Of a DNA stretch of 64,000 bases, positions 3,901 to 31,068 are shown piece after piece. The notes beneath the pieces are model-generated. The model saw only the letters and a program-made list of their open reading frames with translations, did not search any database and was not told the origin of the DNA. The translations under genes and the position numbers were made by a program. Source of the DNA: Oopsacas minuta. Its lineage: Eukaryota > Animalia > Porifera. Where the stretch lies: positions 496,001-560,000 of the forward strand of contig JAKMXF010000266.1 in assembly GCA_024704765.1 (NCBI GenBank), given 5' to 3'. Every line of letters begins with the position of its first letter. Position 1 is the first letter of the stretch.

Positions 3901-6692
3901 ATATCCATGGTGTAGATAAACTACATAAAATATGGGATGATTTCAATATTGACTCCTTGGAATTAGAAGATGGGAATAGACTTTTCAAATCTAAATCCCT
4001 AGATTTAGAAACACGTGACGAAAGTAGCTCAAACTCTCTTGATGAGCTCCACACTACTTTCCTAGACCAAGATATATCTGTATTCCCTCAACCAAGTGAA
4101 GAACTGAATAATAATAATACCTTACAAATGAAATCTAATCATAATTCAACTCATGGACAGGCAACTGAACAAATTTCCTACTCTTACGAGAATTCCCCAC
4201 CTATTTTACCACAACAACATCCACAACAACATCAACAACAATATTATCAATCAGCTGGTAATGGGAAGAGACAATCAGTTCCAAGAGGCGTAGTGCGAGA
4301 AGTCCATCTCTCTCGGAAAAGAGATGCCAACCTCGGTATAAGTATTGTGGAGAAATTCATCCCTGGTGTACTAGAACAGTCTAAAGGTATTTTCATCAAA
4401 TTAATAACAGATCCCATTGTTTTGTCAGGACAACTTGAACAGGATGATCAAGTCCTGGAAGTGAATGGGATTGATATGAACGGGTTTCTCCACGACCAGG
4501 CTGTAAATCTTATCAAAAAGGCAAGTGAGCCTGTTATTTTAAAGCTCCTACATTCACCTGAATTCGTCAAGAGAATATCTTTAGCGAAAATAGCAAGTGA
4601 ACATTCAGAATTAGGCGGGGAAATTATACATTCCTATTTCGTCACCGGTAACAAGGGATCAGGTATTGTAGTAGAGACAGCTAGACAGATAAACGAGAGA
4701 GTTGGACGGACTTACTTCAAAGTATCTGAGGTTATAAAACGCTCAAGTGCAGAAGAAAGTAAGAACATAATGAAAGATGACGTCATAATAAATATTAACG
4801 GGCTGAATGCAGTTGGTATAAATCACCAACAACTAGTTAAACTACTGAACACACCACACTGTGACGTATCCATCATATTATGTCGTACAACAAACAAATC
4901 GCCACGTGAATTAAACAATGATAGACATCCTCCTTCAAGAGCTAGACTATACCTAAAAAGCTGTCTGATCGATAAAGTACATGAAGTTGAAATTTGTGTT
5001 GAAGCACAAGAGAGTGCACATCAAAGGCCTATTATTGTTATTACAGGTGTTAAATCAAAACATCCGTCATTCCTAGAGGAGATACACCCAGGAGATGAAT
5101 TGGTAGCTATCAACAAGAAGAATCTTAACGGCTGGAAGGTTGAGAATGTACAGAGATGGTTGTATGAGCTACAACTCACCTCTCAATACGAGATATCATT
5201 CTATTCACGTGCTCCTCACAGCACAAGCACTAGTACGGGTTCAGCACACTCTTACGAGTTAGAACAAACACGACCACCCTCATACACACATCAGTTATCA
5301 GCACAATTCACCTGTGTATTCTATAAGGAAGCTAGACAGGATGTAGGACTTTTATTTGTAGATGGAGAAGTTGATGGAGTATACATAGAAGAAGTGGATC
5401 CTAATGGATTAGCTGCTACAGACCAAAGAGTACGACCTGGATGTAGAGTAGTAGCTATTAATGATAGAAATCTTATGAACGATGAAGCGTCGTTTGTTGA
5501 AATGGTTCTTAACGGAGTAATAGGTCAGATATCTCTAACTCTAGAGAGTTCATTCGTGCATAGAGTACCTCATCAACATGCACACGGTTACTTCACATAC
5601 TCTTCAGAGAGTAGTCAGGATATGTCTACTACACATTCACCACAACCTCACAGAAGTATGCCTGAACACAATATACCTCCTCAGTATCAAAATATGCAGC
5701 CTCAATATCACAATATTCCCCCTCAGATGCACAATCTGTCCCCACAGGTAAATCTGCCTCCTCCAGTTCATGATATGTCTGATTATTTCCCCAAACGTGG
5801 TACACGCATAGTTCAACTATTCCGGGAAGGAGAAAAGGGGTTCGGATTGACCCTCAGAGGCGGGGCTAACACCAGTCACGGTGACCTCCCTCTCTTCGTC
5901 GGTAAAGTGTACCAACATCAGGCTGCACACCGTTCAGGACAAGTACACGAACGTGACGTCATATTAGCAATCAATGACATACCAACATTAGGCATGACGT
6001 GTATAGAAGCTGTAGCCGTGTTGAAAGCTTATAAAGTTATTACACTAACTCTATCGGATGAGAAGGATCCTATAGCAGATATACTATTACCACAACAGAG
6101 GAATAGTGGTATGTATAACGACCTGATGTCATCTAAGGAGTCTCTCAAATCTCGTGATGCATACATTTCTAACAACAATTCTAATCCAGAACGTAAATAC
6201 GCTTACAATCCGTATTCTCCTGGTCACACACCGCCAATGCGTTACAATACTAATGTCTTAGTGCCTACATACCCAGCTAATATGTACACAGACTGGAATT
6301 CTCATTATATATCTCCTCACGTGATGCAACCTAATGAGAAAATTAACGAACCTCCTCCTTATGAAGTATCACAGAACTATATACTCAAACAGGAGGCGAA
6401 TTTGCTTATGGTACATTTGCAAAACGTCATGCAGCGGGGCTTTGGCTTCAGTATAAGCGGGGGTGTCGATAATTTATCCGGCCCACAGCCCATACTTATA
6501 AAATCAATGACAGACGACGGTGCTGCGAAACTTGACGGTAATTTCGCAGTAGGTGATGAAATATGCGCTGTGAATGGACACTCCCTGATAAATGTTACAC
6601 ATCACCATGCTGTCAATATACTCAAACAATGCCAAGAACAATTGAAGCCAGAACAGGAAGTACAATTATTGATAAGAAAACGACAAGTATAA
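981..6692 (+). CDS. Multi-PDZ scaffold protein (MPDZ/PATJ/InaD-like), 1903 aa, about 11 PDZ domains, single exon
   Basis: Repeated PDZ signatures (e.g. SLGISIQG...GPADMNGIIKEGDRIIEVNG; GFGLTLRGG...HGDLPLFV; GFGFSISGG...GDEICAVNG). The last two PDZs resemble MPDZ C-terminal PDZs. An acceptor-like TGTATAG lies in frame just upstream of the ATG, so an upstream exon is possible. Orthology not established. Confidence 0.9.
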   Translation: MQSKRISITFGQNPEPVGISIKRLDLSEGSGIYVIGIQPNSPAARDGRLKVFDELLTVNDTPVRQFPYDQLRSIFTHRGITLKLTVYRNCSAAILHAIGYPIPNDNTGENFNTYHSPSNSDPSIEYVELHSDMRDFGFFVAPGCGEYPVINHISPASQSELDNRLRIGDELIQVNEHHVRNVASQVVMELIQKNTDIKLKVRHMVDPLKTPTEMHPQVNHTRDVDIISVTIMRDTRGSLGISIQGVTSDNDVSSPEDGIYIAKISTDGPADMNGIIKEGDRIIEVNGNNLKGVDLKRALRLVKMSGNPVNLVLERGRDGKQVELAYDQDSSTENYTQENTFTIPSVVSDVEVSQREESNKSNSIHSGVSSIHGFYPSRLSEASLQFSHDPQGILDKEEKTRLVKEWQPRVGPEKIVKIAQLTKYSADGEIGLEIEPKPVYQKNELTGMKTVISAISSGPAKDDGVLLQGDEILEINGVRVTDVHYDDVIALLKATPQQIRLVVAGPHERGEVPTHYLMSSLSSSEGESPSNTLEMPQRKKSYKSNKFRDAANSSTYPRQQISRLHEIIQTDLDETDDLLLLKEIHEQNRKEQLEELEQMKIEKEKLEREVFSKSELDNEAKLNLRACLDRVQLHYEKETTLPRPSKYSKMFSYKHPNLNSFGQTSTSYVASGIATTPRAPKAPNNPKFFMLDDMENTTKPLPITYNQDSLKTDKSKVAELGLEPNEANLLNLVCVPFNKHESNKKNQPLALIPFPIMSHSATTSDDESIQSPTKLSFPETPILPSIEQEAEHVFNSRIENERQEITVTKGETLGIGIDRQRVPETKGKKYKIVIHDIVAGSAPAKDGRLKIGDELLSINSFNVEGKSKQEVALHITNLPKGPVVLTVLHQQQDTLTKENKHEFLKKGQTPLRTFKLISPEKTNLNKIEKAFSLSTISDGSKIDFLGSRITHSSSNSNNSLNDHIDPYPLKMLSNIHGVDKLHKIWDDFNIDSLELEDGNRLFKSKSLDLETRDESSSNSLDELHTTFLDQDISVFPQPSEELNNNNTLQMKSNHNSTHGQATEQISYSYENSPPILPQQHPQQHQQQYYQSAGNGKRQSVPRGVVREVHLSRKRDANLGISIVEKFIPGVLEQSKGIFIKLITDPIVLSGQLEQDDQVLEVNGIDMNGFLHDQAVNLIKKASEPVILKLLHSPEFVKRISLAKIASEHSELGGEIIHSYFVTGNKGSGIVVETARQINERVGRTYFKVSEVIKRSSAEESKNIMKDDVIININGLNAVGINHQQLVKLLNTPHCDVSIILCRTTNKSPRELNNDRHPPSRARLYLKSCLIDKVHEVEICVEAQESAHQRPIIVITGVKSKHPSFLEEIHPGDELVAINKKNLNGWKVENVQRWLYELQLTSQYEISFYSRAPHSTSTSTGSAHSYELEQTRPPSYTHQLSAQFTCVFYKEARQDVGLLFVDGEVDGVYIEEVDPNGLAATDQRVRPGCRVVAINDRNLMNDEASFVEMVLNGVIGQISLTLESSFVHRVPHQHAHGYFTYSSESSQDMSTTHSPQPHRSMPEHNIPPQYQNMQPQYHNIPPQMHNLSPQVNLPPPVHDMSDYFPKRGTRIVQLFREGEKGFGLTLRGGANTSHGDLPLFVGKVYQHQAAHRSGQVHERDVILAINDIPTLGMTCIEAVAVLKAYKVITLTLSDEKDPIADILLPQQRNSGMYNDLMSSKESLKSRDAYISNNNSNPERKYAYNPYSPGHTPPMRYNTNVLVPTYPANMYTDWNSHYISPHVMQPNEKINEPPPYEVSQNYILKQEANLLMVHLQNVMQRGFGFSISGGVDNLSGPQPILIKSMTDDGAAKLDGNFAVGDEICAVNGHSLINVTHHHAVNILKQCQEQLKPEQEVQLLIRKRQV

Positions 6693-20700: not shown

Positions 20701-23700
20701 ATTAAAAGTAGAAGTGCTATACAGGGAAGCTGAATTTGTTTTCGGATTATTTGGCGGGATATCTTGGCTGGCGCCGCCAATTAGACCAGTTGGGAGTGGT
20801 GTCCGGACACCCAAGGTGGCAGTGGCACTGGATATGATGGGATTTGAAAAGATTTGATTGATTTGATTTGATTTGAATGAAATATACATCAAATCCACAA
20901 CACTGCATGCCTACAACGTGGTTTAGAATATTTTCTTAAGTTGAATGAAAAGTGATGAACCAGATCGTGCGACCTCTTGTATATTATTATTCTACATAAA
21001 ATTAGAATTAAATTCAATGGCTTGTAATATACAAGAACCCGACGAGGTAGTCTATGTATCAGATATGGAGGATCTTATACATAACACTTTTGATAAAATA
21101 ATATCAAAAGTAAACTTAAGAAGAGAAAAACTAATATCACAATTCAGAGATATACAAACACAGAAAAATGCTATTTTCCAATCAATTGATCAGCTCAAAT
21201 CAGCCAGATCCATTCTACAAGAGAAATTACGGATTAATCCCCTTTCAGCAATACAACAACGAACTACTGCAGATATCGATGGAGCACTAGCTAACCTACA
21301 ATTAGAAGCTAGTATAGAGCACATATTTGTGTGTAATGAGAAGAATTTAGATAATGCTCTAACAAGGCTAGGCGGTTTTGAACTACAACCCAATCAATAT
21401 ATCGCGAAAAGTATCCCAAAGTTTGCATTCGGAGCTGATTCAAAGTCATCCTTACGAAAACCTGTAAGACTTTCTGTTGACGAGTCGTTAGACTTAATCG
21501 CGGTTACTGACAGCATTTCCAAACAAATATATCTATTCTCCCTAGAAGGTAAATATCTCAATTCTTTCGGGAAAGATTATTTTGCGCATCCTTGTGCCAT
21601 TAAAATAATTAATCACAACGAAATACTAGTCACTGATTATCAGAAAGAGGATATGTCATTAATTCAATACGAACGCGGTAAAAAAGAAAAGTTTAAGTTA
21701 AAACTAAAACTAAACGAGAGGAGATGCATTACTTCATTAGATTACGATAAGAACAATAATCAGATATACGCTACAGAATCCATTACACATTCTCTATTGA
21801 TCTTCAATAAAGAATTCAAAATCATTACAGACCTGAATAATCTATTCCTTTTCCCACAAAATGTAGTTATTACCGACACAGAAATATACATACAAGATCA
21901 CAATAATCCTTGTTTTCATATTTTATCAAAATATACACTTGAATTTAGTCGGTCACTTATTTCACGTGGATTACACCTAAGTACTGAATCACCATTAAGT
22001 TTTACTATCGACCAAAAAGGCTGTATTATTATAGGAGATAAATCCGGTGTAATACAAGTGTATGCACCGTCTGGACAGCTGATTCATACCTTCGCTAAGA
22101 AAGGAACAGAACTCGGGGAGGTATATTCACCTACTGGAATATTCGTTAGAAGTAACTATGACGTAATTGTTATATCTAACAGCCCTAATTATCCTATTCA
22201 AGTGTTTTAAAACTGAGTAAAATGTTTATAATTTAAGACCGATATCAGCGTAACCTCTATTATCCGAATGCTGTTTACCAGTCCCAACGAGTTCGGGTAA
22301 GTGAGGTTGTACTTTATTATTTGTATATTTAAATGTGATTTATATTCTGTATTAAGATATTCACGTAAACATATATATACCAGTCATAGTGAAGAAATTG
22401 AGGTGTGGATATTTTAGTGGGACATTGGGATTATTCCGGCACGTAGTATATTCATACTAGCTCGGATATTTCTGCATTCAGGGGGACGTTTTTGCAAGGA
22501 CATGACACTGATTATTGTCGGAAATAGGAGCAGCTGAAAATATTTACTCTATTTGACTAAAAAACGACAATTTAATTAACGCTAATTACGAATCGAAATT
22601 TCCCAAAAATATACACACACTATGCGGCACATTATGCAATGCACGTATTTCTTACTTTTGACATTTATTTTTCTTAAAGAAATCTGCGTTTATAAAATAC
22701 TCACTATTACAGTCAAGGATTTATGGTATTAAACTAGAGAAAATAAAGATTCAGACATACGGATATCGTAGAAATTTACACATAACGAGCTCCGAAAATA
22801 TAATTTATGTATAAACTTTGAGTGAATAAAAATCCTTGCTATTTCCTATTTATACTCGTCGAATTATACAACTATACCTCGTGAAAGAATGTGATCATAT
22901 CTGATACAGCTTCCTTGCTCAAATCATGTCCAATCTCACTCCTTAAGAAACCTGTTCCTCTCAGAGAATGATATATATCATCTGAACATACCAGCGGCTG
23001 AGTGAAGAACTTCTCAAAAGGTTGAATACTACAGCTCTTCTTCTTTATCCTGGTTCTAACGTTCTCCTAATTTGAATACATCCGCTTATACATATAGCAA
23101 TATAGTGTATACAAATTTAGAATTTTATTTAGAAAATACACTTGTACAGGCTACTTACCCTGACTTCTCTGATTCTCTTCTCAAACTCCAAATAGAGCAG
23201 AGGAACACTCTTAGCATAAGCTGCTTGTTCTAATCGAATGCATATATCTTGTGTCAGACGGGCAGTTAGCTTTGGCATACCTTCTCCTACAAAATATCCT
23301 TGAATTTAATCGTATCCAATATTTGTAATTGGTTAAGGACGCTACATGGAGATTTATAATGGGAGTTAGGAACTGTCATAAAATTATTCCTTGTAACGAA
23401 TACGAGTTACCCGTAGTAATATTGAATCAGAAATTGTAATATGCATAGCGTTATGATCGATTTTGACTTTGTCAACTCGCCGATTTTAGAAAGCAACAAT
23501 TACCAAAATCGACAACACATTAACAATATAAGGATACACCATATACTTGTACTTACCAGTTAATGAACTCACAAATTGTACATCTATAACACTTGGTACC
23601 AGATTAACTCCATCTGGATTGACCTTACCCAGTTTACTGGATGGAGACGAGTATACTGAATTTGTCATATCATTTATTAACACTAGATTCATGTCTTTGA

Positions 23701-26700
23701 TGTACTGGCTTATAGAATTTATTATAACTACTTTTTTCGTATCTCTTTCATCCTTCAGTATCTCGTCTAAGTGTGTGAACACTAATACACACGTTAATGA
23801 TCTGTCCTTTTTCCAGGATACAGCTTGTATAGACATTAACAAAACTCTAAGTGGTTCTCTTAGGCTATTTTGAAATTTAATATCTTTCAGGAGTTCTACC
23901 ATATTACACACTATGACGTGGAGACTTGAACTTGGACGGAACATATTGTACAGTGGTTGAAATATCTAAAGATATTCAAACTAATAAAAAGATGATAAAC
24001 TGGAGCCCACTTTGGGGCTTCGAGAACGACTAACCGACTAGTGCACAAAGCCCCCTCTGATTGGAATCTCGCATGGGCCCCCAACCCAGCATGCCCCTGG
24101 GACCTCTATACTAATTTTAACACATTCTGTTGGCCCCTGTTATCGTCCGTAGTAGATCAAGGGAGCCTATGGACCACAGGTTGGGAACCGCTAACATTGT
24201 AGTCAAAGGAAATTCTAATTTATCTCTGACAAATCTCTAAAGCAACTTGCAAAAAATAGTAATTTTACAAAGACAATTGCAATTGTCCTGACCATAAATT
24301 GCCTAATAATCGTTGTCATAGCACTACTGAGAGGCTGATGCACCCTATTGTATATGGTAACGTACTGAATCTCCTGAAAAATCCCAAATATCAAAAAGGG
24401 AATCAAGACGTTTCCAGAATTGTAAAGTTTTCGATCTGGTCTTCCATTCATATATCTTCAATCCTTGTGTCATTCTTTCAGACTTTTGTTGTATTGGTTT
24501 TTCTAATAACTTGTGTATTAGGCTAGTTTTCCCTGACTTACTCAGTCCAATCACAACTATTCTATGTCTGTTCCAAATATTGTTTGAATCGGATAGGTTC
24601 AATTGTGTTAGATATCTATAAGGTATAGAATACGTAAGTGTTTTACTTTTAAAAATTAAAATATAATACTCGCAATTATTGTGAAGAATTAGATACGGTT
24701 GAATCGGGTGTTTTGCCTTTATACGAGCATGACAATACCGGCTCCAACGCGTCGCCCCTATAATCCCTACAACCTATCACTAATAGACCATTAGCGGAAC
24801 ACCACTATATAAATACATTAAGCAGATTATACTGTACTAACGTTCTTATGTTAGTTAGACCGAGATCAGCAATATATCTGGGTGGCGAGATAAGCGGAAG
24901 ATTATCAACATTCAGGAATTTGAGTGTGTTGTTCAGATGTCCATTGAATACTTTAATCTACAGAATATATAGATTAATTCCTGAATAAATTGACACCAGA
25001 AATATTAAGAAATTTTACTGAAATATTTGTATTATGGTACTCACAGGATTATTTGATATGTCCAGATACTCCAGTAGCTTTAGACAGTCCAGTAATGTTA
25101 CTTGTATCTCTTTTAGATTGTTATTCTGTAATTGTAACATCCAAATTTGACATTTACTTTTCTTAAAGAAATCTTCGCCAAATAACCCGAACAAATCTTG
25201 AGAATTACTCGGTGAGATAGCTGATTTGGCGACTTTTAATTCTTTCGTGTTTTGAGTTTCGAAATTTTCTTCCTCAAAACCATAATTTTCCAAATCAATC
25301 GTCAAAATATTGTTATCATTCGCTAGTAAAATTTGTATTTTTGAGCCAAGTATCCAAAAGCCGGGTAGAAATGATAACCGATTATGCGAAATATCTAAGT
25401 ATATTAGATCAGGGGTAGTGTAAATTTCTCTTGGAATGAAGTGTAACTTGTTATTTCGCAGTTTGACTACTGAGAGCTTATGGTAATTGAAGAGATCTAG
25501 CTTTGGGAATAAAATAATTTGGCAAATTTTCGTTATATATTTCCAATATTGGTGAAATAGTTTCTACCTGTTTTGAATGAGAACCATGATGGGTGAAGGC
25601 AACGTAATTTCTTATTACTCCAATCTAATGAAAAAGTAATTGAAAATCGCAGTATATGTGTATTTACAATGCTGGAATTATAGTACAAATGCGGATTAGG
25701 AGAAGCAAGATTGAAGTAGGAATTTTCCCAGAATTTACATGTTGCACAGCGTGTTTCCACGTGTGTTTGTACTTAGTCGTTGTTGGAGTTAGATTTTTGC
25801 AAGGATATCACTAAATATCCCCTATATGTATGTCTTCCTACTTCACAGATTCTAATTTCAAATTTGAGTCAATTCCTACTTGAAGAGTAGGTGATTTTCT
25901 ACAGAAACTAGTTTTGTGATTTGGGTTCAATTCCAAAATTAGAATTTTGTGCCAAGTCCTATCTCGTACAAAATCGACATACACAATGGTATCTACTATA
26001 GGTACCATCCATCAATAGTTTATTACCTATCATTAGTCGTGGAATATACTGTGCTCTACAACCTTCTGTTTTCAACGGTTGCTCCATGTCTTGTGGTTCC
26101 CAGGTGCTGCTATACCTATTGTTAGTTGTATTAGCGTACATTGGCTGCATTGAATATTCATCTGGATTGATAGCTAATTTATTCGTAACCTAAAGTAAGG
26201 TATTATAAATTGGATAGTAAAATATCCCATAATTGAAGCTTAATAGTCATACGTGGTAAGTGTTACTGATTATCTTATCCAGCTTAACTCACCATACAGT
26301 ACTGAATAGCTGGAAATTTGTTAAACAAGCTCATTCCTGCTTGCTTAGCGAATTGTCCTACCACTAACTTTGTTGGATGGAAATCATTGTCGTATAGAGT
26401 ACTTGTAAGCTCGAAGCTGTTGTTACTGAAAGACCATCTGTAGACCTAATGAACATCCATGTAAAATTCTAGAATACGATCCTTTGGCTCGTCGCTTCGC
26501 GATGAACTCGGCGCATTGCGAAACGAGGTATCCATTAACTCTAAATTGACGGCCCCTTTGAGTATTATAATATAGCTATATTTAGAACAATGTAACCTCA
26601 ATTTTGAAATTTTACTTTATGTACCTAAAAGTAAACAAATATTCACAATATGTTGTTTACAATACCATATTCGGACTCAGCATACTGAATACCCCAGGAT

Positions 26701-28222
26701 AGTCGTTGAAAGTATGATTCTACCTTAATTTTGAAATTTGTTTACTTTATATTCATAAAAATAACAATAAATTTACATATGATTAATCCAAAAGTGTGAT
26801 AATCGGATTCAGCATGTTCGATATATTTAGTGAAGTTTTATTGAATTATATTTACTTCTTCGATAAACACAATAAATGCATAGTTATGCAACAACTTCAA
26901 AATTACATACCGTAAATTCTTTCCTTGACAACAGACAAACAAACAGACAACAAATGAGATCTAATAATATAGATTCTACAAGGGACATCCGACATCAGCG
27001 CGGGATATATTGACAACTCGTAAATATTATTTAAGCACCTTTCATCCAAAATTGCCAAATCGTATTATTTTTTAGCATTGGGTTTAGGGATACAATACGT
27101 ATAATACAATATAATAATCATTCCATATACCATACTTACCATATCTAAGTATTTTGCTTTCTCCGTCCCTTTCAGCTAAAAAGTAAAACAATCATCTTAT
27201 ATGCAGCAAGCCAGTACATAATAGCATATTGTTCCTCTGAGATTACCCCATTGTAAATTGTACTTCCAAGTCAACAACAATACACTTACCTTGTTTAATT
27301 TTTGTATAGAAACCAGGCTAGCTATATTAGTTAATATTATATTCTGATATCTGGTTACTATCTCAGCACTTCCAACTTCATAATAAGACAGAGATACTTC
27401 TTGTTTTATACATAGCTCCTACAGGATTATTATTAACATATAAATATGGTAGCTTTATTACGAAAACCGTATTTCTTACGTCTATTGTTTCTGTATCTAA
27501 TATCCTTGCTTCAGGATTTTCTAAGTGTGTTCCTATAAGTGTAATGTGTGCATCTTTGTTGATACGTTTACACTCAACTAGCCATGGTTGTATGTTTTTA
27601 CAGGGTTCCTTGGTAATGAGGTGAAATATATAATTGAAATATACAACATAATAGAATAATTGGTAAATTTATACCCACTCTAATGTTGAGGTCGAATAGA
27701 ATGATGATTATATCTGGTAGTGTTTCAGTGTGTTCCTCTACCAACCCCCTTCCTTCTATCTGCGAAATTGAACATATAATTTATTACCATTCTAAAAACA
27801 TGCTTTTTTTGCAAAATTCACTCTCCTTTGAACACGATAGAGTTCCCACCCGAGATAAACCCAATAATGAAGAAATAATTTTGGCTCCAAGTTGTTGATA
27901 ACTTAACAAGAACTCCAATACAAAACGGTCAAATGTAGAAAAGTCAGTGCTGCATTTCCGTATTTATTATGACTAAGGGAGGATCATTTGATAAATATTC
28001 CCTAATCAGCTGACTGGGTTCGTGATATGACCCTACTCACAGAGAACTTACGAAATTGACATGTATACTCTCTGAGAGGAGGTTGACTTGATGAGGAGTG
28101 ACTCTCGTGATTTCTTGTATTGCTCGTCTCTATAATGCAATTATGTGTAGTAATTAGTAATGCGTGATAAATACAATAATAATATCCGTATAACATATCT
28201 CTTCAAATTACCTAATAATCAT
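8765..28222 (-). CDS. LRRK-like ROCO protein, multi-exon: degenerate N-terminal G-like domain - LRR - ROC - COR - pseudokinase - WD40
   Basis: Most hand-spliced GT-AG exons join in frame. LRR exon ~25030-25497 (LRNNKLHFIP, LDISHNRL); ROC exon 24366-24615 (GLSKSGKT, WDFSG); 23557-23965 (FTHLD, VSSLTG|EG); 23159-23286; COR 22878-23066 joined to 17196-17388 (FFHE|EGLLF); COR motif RIYKMRFLPLGFWNILLMR ~16480-16530; HFPGL and APDLL ~14580-14820; kinase exons ~12700-14400; WD40-type exons 8765-12320. The start at 28222 and a few small exons are uncertain. Confidence 0.88.
11941..12110. mobile_element. pogo/Tc1-type MITE (TACAGTCAAC...GTTGACTGTA)
   Basis: Imperfect TIRs with TA flanks; a related copy lies at 18403-18553. 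Confidence 0.7.
15676..16122 (+). CDS. MRPL43: Mitochondrial ribosomal protein L43, intronless, nested antisense in a 739-nt intron of the LRRK-like gene
   Basis: L51/S25/CI-B8 fold pattern (S-x-GIRKYL...FASKFPSV...PRIEAEY) and C-terminal TTRPSIQGNWHPF; ATTAAA about 25 nt after the stop. Confidence 0.9.
   Translation: MSSLPFAELGVMGRKLIQLKRISFHYSKTFNASHGIRKYLDGDLVAFASKFPSVAIYLRQDDGEPRIEAEYLCGTKKTVPLKKYTPEKIKNELWKLRSESGINVGQIVRYWHTTRPSIQGNWHPFMFPFPDNSQYCIRDREDKINNLE
18120..20586 (+). CDS. POLD2: DNA polymerase delta subunit 2; exons 18120-18364, 18763-19499, 20195-20586 (457 aa)
   Basis: Motifs YSQQYAQIYNAR, CCIVGNIFKDMRLKPSVL, MPGTNEPGNITLPQQP, G|TSGQNIDNI, WGHMAPTAPETLSCYPY, PNIYFAGNQ; all junctions GT-AG and in phase. 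Confidence 0.95.
18403..18553. mobile_element. MITE of the same family as 11941-12110, in POLD2 intron 1
   Basis: TACAATCAACTCCCCGTTATATCG...AACGGGAGTTGACTG termini. Confidence 0.6.
21017..22210 (+). CDS. Coiled-coil + NHL-repeat beta-propeller protein (TRIM-NHL-like C-terminal half, no RING/B-box seen), intronless
   Basis: N-terminal coiled coil followed by NHL repeats (KPVRLSVDE..LIAVTD; FAHPCAI; PLSFTIDQKGCIIIGD; YSPTGIFV). ATG at 21017 preferred over 20945. Confidence 0.8.
   Translation: MACNIQEPDEVVYVSDMEDLIHNTFDKIISKVNLRREKLISQFRDIQTQKNAIFQSIDQLKSARSILQEKLRINPLSAIQQRTTADIDGALANLQLEASIEHIFVCNEKNLDNALTRLGGFELQPNQYIAKSIPKFAFGADSKSSLRKPVRLSVDESLDLIAVTDSISKQIYLFSLEGKYLNSFGKDYFAHPCAIKIINHNEILVTDYQKEDMSLIQYERGKKEKFKLKLKLNERRCITSLDYDKNNNQIYATESITHSLLIFNKEFKIITDLNNLFLFPQNVVITDTEIYIQDHNNPCFHILSKYTLEFSRSLISRGLHLSTESPLSFTIDQKGCIIIGDKSGVIQVYAPSGQLIHTFAKKGTELGEVYSPTGIFVRSNYDVIVISNSPNYPIQVF
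26476..26973 (-). mobile_element. Non-autonomous Helitron/Helentron-like element in an LRRK-like intron
   Basis: 5' A|TCTATATTATTAGATCTC...GTCTGTTTG; 3' GC-rich hairpin (GCGAAGCGACGAGCCAAAGGATCGT); ~380 nt shared with 38170-38553. Confidence 0.6.
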
Positions 28223-28468
28223 TCAAAATAGGTGAAATAAATGCCAATTAACGAAATTCGAGATGATGTTCGTTCTGTAATCCGTACAGTTAACTGAATC
28301 ATTTTGTATTATATTTACGAGCTGAATACTCGCTGGAAATGAATTAAGCGAACTTGATGTGTATTTAAAGTAAGCTAACTATCTTATATGTCTACCTTTA
28401 TTACAATATTTTCTTTACTATATTGTGATTAGATTTTTGCTATCAAATTACATAACCTCACCAACACC

Positions 28469-28693
28469 ATGCCACTCTCAACCTACGTATATTACACTTC
28501 ATGGGGCCTCTTCACGACCGTGTGGGGACATGTGATAGCAGGACATCCTGTTATGTACAAACCCTGGCGACACCTGGTCTCCACTGGTATCGGATTAGGG
28601 GCAGGTCACCTCATGCACCACTACGAAACTACAGTGCATAAACGCTATCTAACGATGATAGAGGAAGACGATGATGAAGATCTGTTCAGATGA
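28469..28693 (+). CDS. Complex I accessory subunit B14.5b/NDUFC2-like, short form (74 aa)
   Basis: Two hydrophobic segments flanking PVMYKPWRHLVSTGIG, resembling the P-x-x-x-x-PW-x-H-x-x-x-x-G-x-G core I recall from plant/fungal B14.5b homologs. Confidence 0.6.
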   Translation: MPLSTYVYYTSWGLFTTVWGHVIAGHPVMYKPWRHLVSTGIGLGAGHLMHHYETTVHKRYLTMIEEDDDEDLFR

Positions 28694-29131
28694 CCTGTCA
28701 GCTGATATGAACTTATTGTTCATTAATTATTGATAAGGTCGAGTATAATTAAATTTCTAATACCTGTAATTGTGTATTGAAATGTTGTCATGGCATGGGA
28801 ATGGGAATCATTGCATGTTAGCTAAATGGGGATCTAATTGAAATCCTATAAGAAATGAGAATGCTATGGAACAAATAGTGTTTGACCCCCAAGACTTAAG
28901 GTGCCATTGAATGTACAAAAGATTCACTCAATTATGATTTATAATATCCAAAATATAGCTATAACTAAATTTAACTAAAAGAATCCTAGGAATGTATTAG
29001 ACTCCCAATTTAATTCTATCAATTTTGAAGCATATTTCTGGCGAATTAATAACGTATCATCATTTTATGAATGATTTCGAAATACTATAATGTAGATATT
29101 ATCACACTAAAGTTACTGTTTATTCAGCGAA

Positions 29132-29734
29132 ATGCTAACTAGAACATTTCACCGAATTTCAAGAAACAGTTCGCTTTCATTACGAAAAATGTCGACTCTT
29201 TTTAAAGACCCAATCGAGACGATAGTAAAAACACCACCTGAAGTGACATCACTCAATTATATACTCATATCAGGACGTGTATCAAGGGCCCCAGAATGGT
29301 ATGAAGAAGATGGGAAAACTCTCTTAGCTTTAGGAGTACGAACAACTTATTCTCGCATGAAAAAGGAAATAATTACAGAGAATGGGATCGTTAAATGGTG
29401 TCAGTACTTCATCATGGGTCAGCTACATCGATGTGTTTGTGGTTATAAACTTTTCGGAGAGAAGCAATTAGATTTGAAGTATATTTCTAATACAATCAAT
29501 AAAGGCGATAAAGTTATAGTGAAAGGCTCGTTAAGATATAAAAAAATGATTGACCGGGTCTGTAATGACAAAATCATTGGTGTTGATATTCTTGTTTCGA
29601 GTCTTATAGTAATTGAGCGTGGAGATGGTGATTTTGGTGATGGAATTCTTCACACTGAGGCTGGTAGTAAAATCAATATCGGAAAACTGAATAAAGGAAT
29701 TTTAACATCTGAGATCTTCGAGTATAAAGGCTAA
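29132..29734 (+). CDS. Mitochondrial single-stranded DNA-binding protein-like (OB fold), divergent
   Basis: Arg/Ser/Leu-rich presequence-like N-terminus; LNYILISGRV, QLHRCV and INKGDKVIVKGSLRY match SSB OB-fold motifs. Confidence 0.65.
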   Translation: MLTRTFHRISRNSSLSLRKMSTLFKDPIETIVKTPPEVTSLNYILISGRVSRAPEWYEEDGKTLLALGVRTTYSRMKKEIITENGIVKWCQYFIMGQLHRCVCGYKLFGEKQLDLKYISNTINKGDKVIVKGSLRYKKMIDRVCNDKIIGVDILVSSLIVIERGDGDFGDGILHTEAGSKINIGKLNKGILTSEIFEYKG

Positions 29735-29971
29735 CCTTAAATATTTACTTATTTAAACTAGTTTATTCTTAAAGTTATAATCTATGTAACGTACAGTGAA
29801 ATTTGAGATGAGAGTTGTTTTTCCTGATCCTTGCGATCCCAAAATTAAAATGTTGTAAGGCCTAAAGAGAGAATTTGTTTACGAACACTAGTCATTTGGA
29901 TAGAAACACCAATTTTCATATATTATCAGTGCTCAAACTGCAATAATTCACCACAATTGAATCCATGATAT

Positions 29972-30091
29972 CAGTGGTTCTCAACCTGTGGTTCATGGAC
30001 CCCTTGGTTGTCCACGAATGACTGCAGGGAGTCTACAGAATGTGTTAAAATTGATATAGGGGTCCACGGGTGAAAAGGTTGAGAACCGGCG
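29972..30091. mobile_element. hAT-type MITE (CAGTGGTTCTCAACC termini)
   Basis: TIR pair CAGTGGTTCTCAACC / GGTTGAGAACCGGCG; related single ends near 24180-24192 and 57460-57485; no clean 8-bp TSD. Confidence 0.6.
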
Positions 30092-30458
30092 CATAAACAT
30101 TCATAGAAAATACTTACATTTCAACACTATATAGAAATATATTATAATAATTATCAAATTTTCTCTTATAAACTTTGTCGTTGTATAACTTCGAATCCAA
30201 AAGGAAAGTCCCGATTGATTTTTCCTATTGTCTTATATATCATGCCTATATTAAATTGTCTGTATTAGCGGAGAACCTGCTAGTATGCAATATGCAACGT
30301 GATACTATTACAGTCAATATAGTAATTTTCATAAGCCATAGAATATTACTTGTAAATTGGGCTTTACTCTTAGACTTCGAATTCACCTTTGCTTAATATG
30401 TATTTATGTAATAAATAAATATTCAATAAATTAGAATCCTTAAATATTTTATATTTTT

Positions 30459-31068
30459 GTGTCTAATCAACTCTTTTGAAAGTTGTAATTTTTGGAGATG
30501 GTGGAGTTGGTAAATCTTCATTAATGACTCAATATATAGAGAATAAATTCGAGACAGGTTACTATTACACAGTTGGAGTTGAGTTTTGAATAAAGATATA
30601 TTTTATCTTGGAAACTCATACACATTGCAGATATGGGATACAGCTGGTCAGGAGAGATTTAAGAGTCTAAGAACACCATTCTACAGAGGAGCTGATTGCT
30701 GTATTCTGACTTTCGCAGTCAACGACAAGCAATCCTTTGCAAATATTGATTTCTGGAAAAAAGAATTTTTATACTATGCGGATATAAGAGATACCAATAA
30801 TTTCCCTTTTATAGTAATCGGGAATAAGATAGATTTAGGACAGGAAAGAACAGTGAGTGAAGAAGAAGCGAGTATTTGGTGTGGCAATCAATCTATTCCT
30901 TATTACCAGACATCAGCTAAAACATCAGAGAATGTTAATATAGCATTTTTTCATGCATTAGAGATTTTCGCAGGTTCTGCGCCAGGTCAGAAAATTGAGA
31001 AATATCAATCAGTGAATTTATCTACCTAAACAGACTCAGGGAAAAATGAAAGAGATTGCACTTGTTAG
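30459..31068 (+). pseudogene. Disabled Rab9 paralog
   Basis: Start is GTG rather than ATG (30459); 1-nt deletions at ~30465 and ~30584 relative to the 33957 copy; in-frame TAA at 31027-31029 followed by TDSGKNERDCTC-stop (vestigial CxC motif). Confidence 0.8.

Follow-up and report, generated by a model that had tools for sequence, protein, structure and literature searches.

A predicted Roc-like G domain at the N-terminus of a ROCO protein in the sponge Oopsacas minuta

The window analyzed here is a 64,000-nt stretch of the genome of the glass sponge Oopsacas minuta (contig JAKMXF010000266.1 of assembly GCA_024704765.1, positions 496,001–560,000), and all coordinates are positions in this window. 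On its minus strand lies a gene of the ROCO family, akin to that of LRRK, a protein of Parkinson's disease, with exons for leucine-rich repeats (LRR) and a central Roc domain (hereafter ROC). An original prediction, made from the letters alone, had placed a second small-GTPase-like domain of the Roc type (THL-D/E) at the N-terminus of this LRRK-like protein, ahead of the LRR and the ROC, and this placement is upheld. We consider it likely that the gene begins with a complete five-exon, 162-residue G domain of the Ras superfamily, Roc-flavored, with its P-loop kept, probably nucleotide-holding and partly degenerate. The encoded protein would then run from this G domain through a linker of ~117 residues to the LRR and the ROC.

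Exons and transcript of the ROCO gene

Four public runs of one sample cover the window. X4 was judged to be RNA-like and X1–X3 to be DNA-like, as only X4 contigs skip segments with CT..AC ends on the plus strand (GT..AG on the minus strand). Depth in X4 is ~400–500 over exons and 5–75 over the sampled introns, the ROCO exon contigs being similar in depth throughout (405–500), and no splice joints of the ROCO exons were found in the DNA runs X1–X3. Three exons, E3 (27679..27759), E4 (27480..27608), and E5 (27290..27418), had been proposed from the sequence and said to splice in phase 0. Each is bounded by AG and GT on the minus strand, and the X4 joints 27607->27678 and 27417->27479 match the two introns (27609–27678 and 27419–27479) exactly. 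A further joint, 27759->28052, links E3 to the next exon upstream, E2 (28052..28129), which thus has an RNA joint at its donor. E2 (28129–28052) falls within the range 27290–28222 that the original prediction covered and had been missed there.

Downstream, the 27290|27175 junction appears in X4 as loose ends carrying letters of the neighboring exon, and joints at 27140|26445, 26293|26189, 26027|25624, 25568|25496, 25045|24957, 24842|24615, and 24366|23965 carry the transcript onward. These continuous joints, together with the equal depth, place E2–E5, the LRR exons, and the ROC exons in one transcript, so that the proposed connection to the LRR exons is seen in RNA and the alternative of a separate gene, which had been named alongside it, falls away. 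E6 (27175–27140), E7 (26445–26293), and E8 (26189–26027) form the linker, an open frame with RNA joints, in which Pfam finds nothing useful and no domain is recognized; it is conserved in relatives, with a ratio of nonsynonymous to synonymous substitution rates (dN/dS) of 0.03–0.28. E9–E11 (24842..25624) encode the LRR (Pfam LRR_8, E 3.5e-10, 39.9 bits, above cut-off), and E12 and E13 (23556..24615) encode the central ROC with P-loop GLSKSGKT, DFSG, and THLD (E12, Pfam Roc, E 9.6e-10, 39.2 bits, above cut-off). The order that marks ROCO proteins, LRR followed by Roc, is therefore found here in consecutive exons of one transcript, and weak Beta-prop_LRRK2 matches (E 0.0075–0.019) follow downstream of the ROC. 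The gene diverges strongly from other LRRK/ROCO proteins. For the second half of its ROC (23558–23965, minus strand), there is no relative at E<0.001 among 1.84 billion representative proteins, bar fragments from related assemblies.

The frame is stop-free over 707 codons, from the proposed start codon through the second ROC exon, with GT–AG ends on every intron; no stop-free read-through of the short introns was found, as every in-frame intron contains stops. The frame of E3–E5 has no ATG between the stop near 28133 and 27142 (150 open codons in DNA of 33% G+C), so the coding start must be further upstream. Two nearer candidates were rejected. One, an ATG at 28196, belongs to a different frame, which meets a stop in E3, and the open reading frame (ORF) at 27918–27784, whose P-loop-like GLSRVGTL might have served as a degenerate P-loop, is intronic and skipped by the 27759->28052 joint.

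Scanning the minus-strand frames upstream revealed a perfect Walker A motif, GSQGSGKTT, in a 67-base exon, E1 (29795..29861). The earlier statement that no P-loop lies upstream is thus overturned by an intact, invariant one at 29861–29795. In the window E1 is preceded by an AG acceptor rich in pyrimidines and followed by a phase-0 donor, ACT|GTACGT. It is separated from E2 by intron 1 (28130..29794, minus strand, 1665 bases), which contains two plus-strand genes: one of 74 amino acids at 28469–28693, with a very high X4 depth (~16,700) and no Pfam family, and one of 200 amino acids at 29132–29734 with a weak Pfam match to SSB (E 1e-4). This nesting accounts for the P-loop having been missed in the first reading. 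At the E2 acceptor there is an in-frame TAG at 28132–28130, and the unspliced X4 contig 28100–28453 starts exactly 30 bases (k-1) inside E2. E1 opens with a single G, and the exon before it ends ...GAAAT|GTAAGT at 30118. The last two bases of this exon 0 (30118..30119, minus strand; 5′ end unmapped), placed by its conserved donor, are AT, which the G of E1 would complete to a split start codon (AT|G). As a lesser alternative, a spliced leader rather than exon 0 would supply the AT. Since the first coding exon sits behind two nested genes and a split ATG, gene finders will tend to truncate this protein.

Motifs and relationships of the N-terminal domain

Relatives were found through ORF fragments matching the ROC exon in an exhaustive search of representative proteins. 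They amount to eight syntenic loci in six assemblies, with a shared neighborhood of Sld5, Rab9, an SSB-like gene, a small gene, the ROCO exons, NHL, and POLD2. Two of them (L005 and L006) are cut short upstream, and the comparison of E1–E5 covers the remaining six (L001–L004, L007, and L008). The same search returned no annotated full-length protein, only the relatives' genomic ORF fragments and a spurious HEAT-repeat protein (P0006).

Residues 1–162 very likely adopt a Ras-like G fold. E1 (residues 1–23) would supply the hydrophobic strand β1 (Y3–L8), the P-loop (G1, G9-S-Q-G-S-G-K15-T16), and the start of α1, which spans the E1|E2 junction; the Walker A pattern GxxxxGK[ST] follows β1 directly, and YNILIL-GSQGSGKT is invariant in the six aligned loci. 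E2 (residues 24–49) holds the end of α1, switch I with the invariant Thr31 and Thr34, and a short β2–β3 hairpin. From K15 to T34, a plausible G2 threonine, there are 19 residues, as there are from K16 to T35 in Ras, a spacing that fits a direct E1|E2 join. The place of G3 straddles the next junction as N48-F49|I50-E51-G52-R/K53, invariant and like the Roc DFAGR with the Asp replaced and one extra residue; no Asp stands three residues ahead of the Gly, as DxxG would have it, in any locus. E3 (residues 50–76, RNA joints on both sides) contributes the G3-like IEG-R/K, a short switch II, and β4 (I66–D72, within IIIILFDLN), and E4 (residues 77–119, with RNA joints) an α3 that includes P84-W-L, then β5 and G4. 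In place of the G4 pattern [NT]KxD, E4 has T103-H-L-E106 in five loci and Val at 106 in L001/L002 (GTHL-E/V), a Roc-type THL without the Asp. E5 (residues 120–162) brings α4, β6 (Y131-Y-E), G5 (G135-S/T-A137), and an α5 ending at ~L160; here the SA[KL] pattern expected after β6 is found as YYEVG-S/T-A, with Y, Y, E, V, G, and A invariant. The β4-α3-β5-G5 pattern with GTHLE on which the original prediction was built is thus present, and it is conserved in the six related loci. Its description of the domain as degenerate stands as far as the lost G3 and G4 aspartates go; the picture of a disabled half-domain is not supported, since E1 and E2 complete the domain and G1 is intact.

The same motifs could be read as those of a conventional, fully active GTPase switch that merely looks odd: G1 is intact, the G2 Thr is conserved, Gly52 is followed by Arg or Lys as in the LRRK2 DFAGR, and G5 has its S/T-A. 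We regard this as improbable, however, with the G3 Asp (which serves Mg2+ through a water) and the G4 Asp (which reads guanine) missing in every locus and G4 being Val in one lineage.

Family and structure comparisons were made exon by exon. In Pfam, E1 gives weak matches below cut-off (E 5e-4 to 0.05) to many P-loop NTPase families, including G-alpha, Roc (E 0.02), and Arf, and against PDB chains it matches GTPases that include LRRK2 Roc constructs, with dynein light intermediate chain also among the matches. Slid without gaps along a Rab9 profile, it lands on the P-loop (0/1000 shuffles). An E4 profile run against 177,635 distinct PDB sequences had two matches only, the better being LRRK2 Roc (3d6t, residues 96–121; a weak E of 1.6), and that match covers the homologous α3-β5-G4 stretch with an identical PWL-to-GTHL spacing. 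By language-model features (Atlas), the nearest named clusters among the listed hits for E4 are Ras, Arf, Rab, and Roc (scores 0.84–0.88). E5 aligns to columns 144–175 of the Rab9 profile (the YYETSAK/α5 region) at ~1 bit, and in the ungapped slide the top two offsets of E4 and the second-best offset of E5 are the expected ones. The Rab9 hidden Markov model and the slide are significant for E1 only; the domain is unlike Rab. There were no matches to E4 or to the E1 ORF in word searches, nor to the E4 profile in a scan of JGI metagenomes, and Pfam was silent on the window's E2–E5 and on all E4 and E5 orthologues.

With most single exons lacking a significant family match, the likeness to a G domain might be put down to chance, or the exons assigned to a separate upstream gene. 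This is hardly credible and already largely refuted. A single transcript of equal depth stays open in frame as it passes to the LRR and ROC exons; G1, G2, β4, PWL, G4, and G5 follow one another in the order and at the distances that suit a G domain of 162 residues; and E13, which encodes the latter half of the accepted central ROC, has no Pfam match either when run alone as a control, which makes the Pfam silence of single exons E3–E5 uninformative.

Related loci and their surroundings

E1–E6 occur in the same order in L001–L004, L007, and L008, and in these six loci the AG/GT boundaries of E1–E5 lie at identical codon positions and in identical phases. The AG|G acceptor and ACN|GTA(C/T)GT donor of E1 are kept across the relatives, and the exon-0 donor GA(A/G)AT|GTAAGT is kept upstream of E1 in the window, L001, L003, L004, L007, and L008, while the intron between exon 0 and E1 varies from ~95 to ~590 bases. 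Every related locus that extends far enough upstream has both nested plus-strand genes between E1 and E2, and the comparison found no further conserved exon between E1 and E2. We infer the E1|E2 and exon 0|E1 junctions from this conservation.

An opposing account would leave E1 out of this mRNA, so that E2–E5 would encode a truncated, G-like half-domain with another start or would be a 5′ leader. Such an account can point to the E1|E2 joint not being among those found in X4 contigs, which were compared with the window up to 29399, to the two genes within the supposed intron 1, and to the lack of an in-frame ATG from ~28133 to 27142. It is nevertheless quite improbable. The phase of E1 fits that of E2 in all six loci, and E1, being 67 bases long with AG and GT conserved at its ends, must be an internal minus-strand exon. 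E2–E5 evolve as protein (dN/dS ~0.1) and lack a start codon themselves, the edge of the X4 contig agrees with an acceptor at 28129, and the stretch from E1 to E2 contains no further conserved exon.

With E1 taken as the first exon of the domain, its conservation can be compared with that of the rest of the gene. E1 protein identity is 95%–100%, with zero or one amino-acid change, although 5–9 of ~16 synonymous sites differ (dN/dS 0–0.05), and 20 of its 22 residues are invariant. Summed over E1–E5, dN/dS is 0.09–0.14 at dS 0.9–2.0, and dN is the same as in the exons for the central ROC and the LRR; invariant columns number 18 in E3, 29 of 43 in E4, and 26 in E5. The P-loop exon is the most constrained in the 5′ half of the gene, and the N-terminal P-loop is more uniform than the P-loop of the central ROC, which has variable positions that change from locus to locus.

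These figures bear on whether the domain might be a pseudoGTPase that holds no nucleotide and has been retained solely for structure or docking. The replaced G3 Asp (N48/F49 ahead of IEG), the change of the G4 Asp to Glu in most loci and to Val in L001/L002, and the short switch II all speak for this, and yet we think it unlikely. The most constrained exon is the one with the P-loop (5–9 synonymous changes against 20 of 22 invariant residues), that P-loop is better conserved than the one in the accepted central ROC, and Thr34 is invariant at the G2 spacing. Nucleotide-free pseudoGTPases usually let G1 decay. The domain is probably a second Roc-like domain that still binds nucleotide and not an empty relic, as read from its pattern of conservation.

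Several other features of the locus were observed. The Rab9 gene (30478–31029, plus strand) and the ROCO gene stand head to head, their starts less than ~400 bases apart, an arrangement that all relatives share. The window's Rab9 frame is interrupted at four consecutive T (30584–30587), where relatives have five, and there is a difference in the start region too; a homopolymer error of the assembly, not a pseudogene, is the probable explanation. At 26400–27000, the E6–E7 intron holds a very high-copy repeat, with a summed contig depth of 10^4–10^5 in the four runs and many rearranged joints. At 29960–30100, in intron 0, there is a palindromic element resembling a miniature inverted-repeat transposable element (GGTTCTCAACC...GGTTGAGAACC), with a similar one at 24041–24202 between the two ROC exons; in a comparison of intron 0, the element was absent from the relatives. 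At the contig start of L005 there is an inverted second copy of E2–E5 (81–685 versus 1669–2290), probably an assembly artifact or a palindromic duplication. In L002, a haplotype or paralogue, a tandem repeat of ~72 bases fills the E2–E3 intron (4766–6253), which is 1488 bases long; the same intron of L001 has 962 bases.

The predicted domain among known G proteins

Several results weigh against a complete G domain that holds nucleotide. The PDB match of E4 (E 1.6) and its Atlas scores (<0.9) are leads only. E2, E3, and E5 alone match no family or structure: Pfam is silent, PDB profile searches with these three give spurious matches only, and for E5 the Atlas yields no usable match. When E3 and E4 were compared by hhalign with the gene's own ROC exon, no significant relation emerged, the THL motif alone being aligned, and a recent internal duplication of the ROC is thus not supported. 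Binding of nucleotide may be weak or absent with the G3 and G4 aspartates gone. Lastly, neither an E1|E2 nor an exon 0|E1 joint was found in the X4 contigs as compared with the window up to 29399.

We favor the reading of a second, nucleotide-holding Roc-like domain. The strongest constraint falls on the P-loop, which argues that nucleotide is still bound, and the domain would hold it by its phosphates. The loss of the G3 and G4 aspartates, with Val at G4 in one lineage, speaks for hydrolysis that is slow or absent and for a relaxed base specificity, and the domain may be a slow or non-hydrolyzing switch of this kind. In that case it might regulate the LRR-ROC module of its own chain or pair with it. 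More specifically, a built-in partner G domain might form a nucleotide-dependent pseudo-heterodimer in cis with the central ROC, for which G proteins activated by dimerization provide a model, or might substitute for the docking of a free Rab on the LRRK2 N-terminus; we offer this suggestion tentatively, as a rather doubtful one.

Among known domains the closest likeness is to the Roc of LRRK2 (PDB 3d6t and others). Both have a G-x-x-GSGKTTL-type P-loop, a β4 with DL, a PWL helix, and L-x-GTHL at the same PWL-to-G spacing, and in both a basic residue follows the G3 glycine (DFAGR in LRRK2, IEG-R/K in the sponge). That residue of LRRK2, R1398, has reportedly been called a γ-phosphate sensor. 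The sponge domain differs in that its G3 Asp is replaced by Asn/Phe with an extra residue, its G4 Asp by Glu or Val, and its β2–β3 hairpin and switch II are shorter; the match itself is weak (E4 alone, E 1.6). It is also followed by the linker of ~117 residues and the LRR, not by COR. Roc is always followed immediately by COR, no protein having Roc or COR alone (PMC6320773). With the E6–E8 linker and then the LRR behind it, the N-terminal domain falls outside the Roc-COR definition and is Roc-like in sequence only.

In its remaining layout the gene resembles LRRK1 and LRRK2, in which the LRR precede Roc, and the weak Beta-prop_LRRK2 matches downstream point the same way; the family layout includes an LRR-Roc-COR-kinase-WD40 group (PMC6337361, PMC6320773). 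The N-terminus of LRRK1/2, however, consists of ankyrin (ANK) repeats, or of armadillo (ARM) plus ANK repeats (PMC6337361), where the sponge protein has a G domain. Two G domains in one polypeptide, Ras-like or TRAFAC, are found in Miro1/2 and EngA/Der, and the second G domain of Miro is atypical. These are unrelated families with other partner domains, and the likeness is one of layout. Ras-like domains with degenerate G3 and G4, built into or joined to larger assemblies, are also known as the pseudoGTPases CENP-M, dynein light intermediate chain, and the pG domains of p190RhoGAP. The sponge domain differs in keeping a perfect and most strongly constrained G1, which points to phosphate binding having been retained.

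In reviews of the ROCO family (PMC6337361, PMC6320773), members fall into three groups whose N-terminal modules include LRR, ANK, and ARM among others, and a second G domain is not among them. Literature searches with phrases for a second, N-terminal, or tandem Roc returned only the two Roc domains of dimers. The original suspicion that the architecture might be undescribed thus agrees with the literature searched, in which no paper was found to describe an N-terminal G domain in the ROCO family. Within the data examined, this layout occurs only in the Oopsacas minuta genome and six related assemblies.

A single Roc-COR unit is the defining feature of ROCO proteins, and for LRRK2 there is still debate over the regulation of this GTPase inside the chain. 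In LRRK1/2, the ARM/ANK repeats dock free Rab GTPases. The sponge gene would be a natural, conserved departure from this plan: where the Rab-binding region would stand, it has a second G domain, Roc-like and with its P-loop intact, whose compact 162 residues lend themselves to tests of pairing with Roc. If the proposed partnership is true, the protein would be a self-contained two-GTPase switch, and a natural fusion of a small GTPase to the LRRK N-terminal region.

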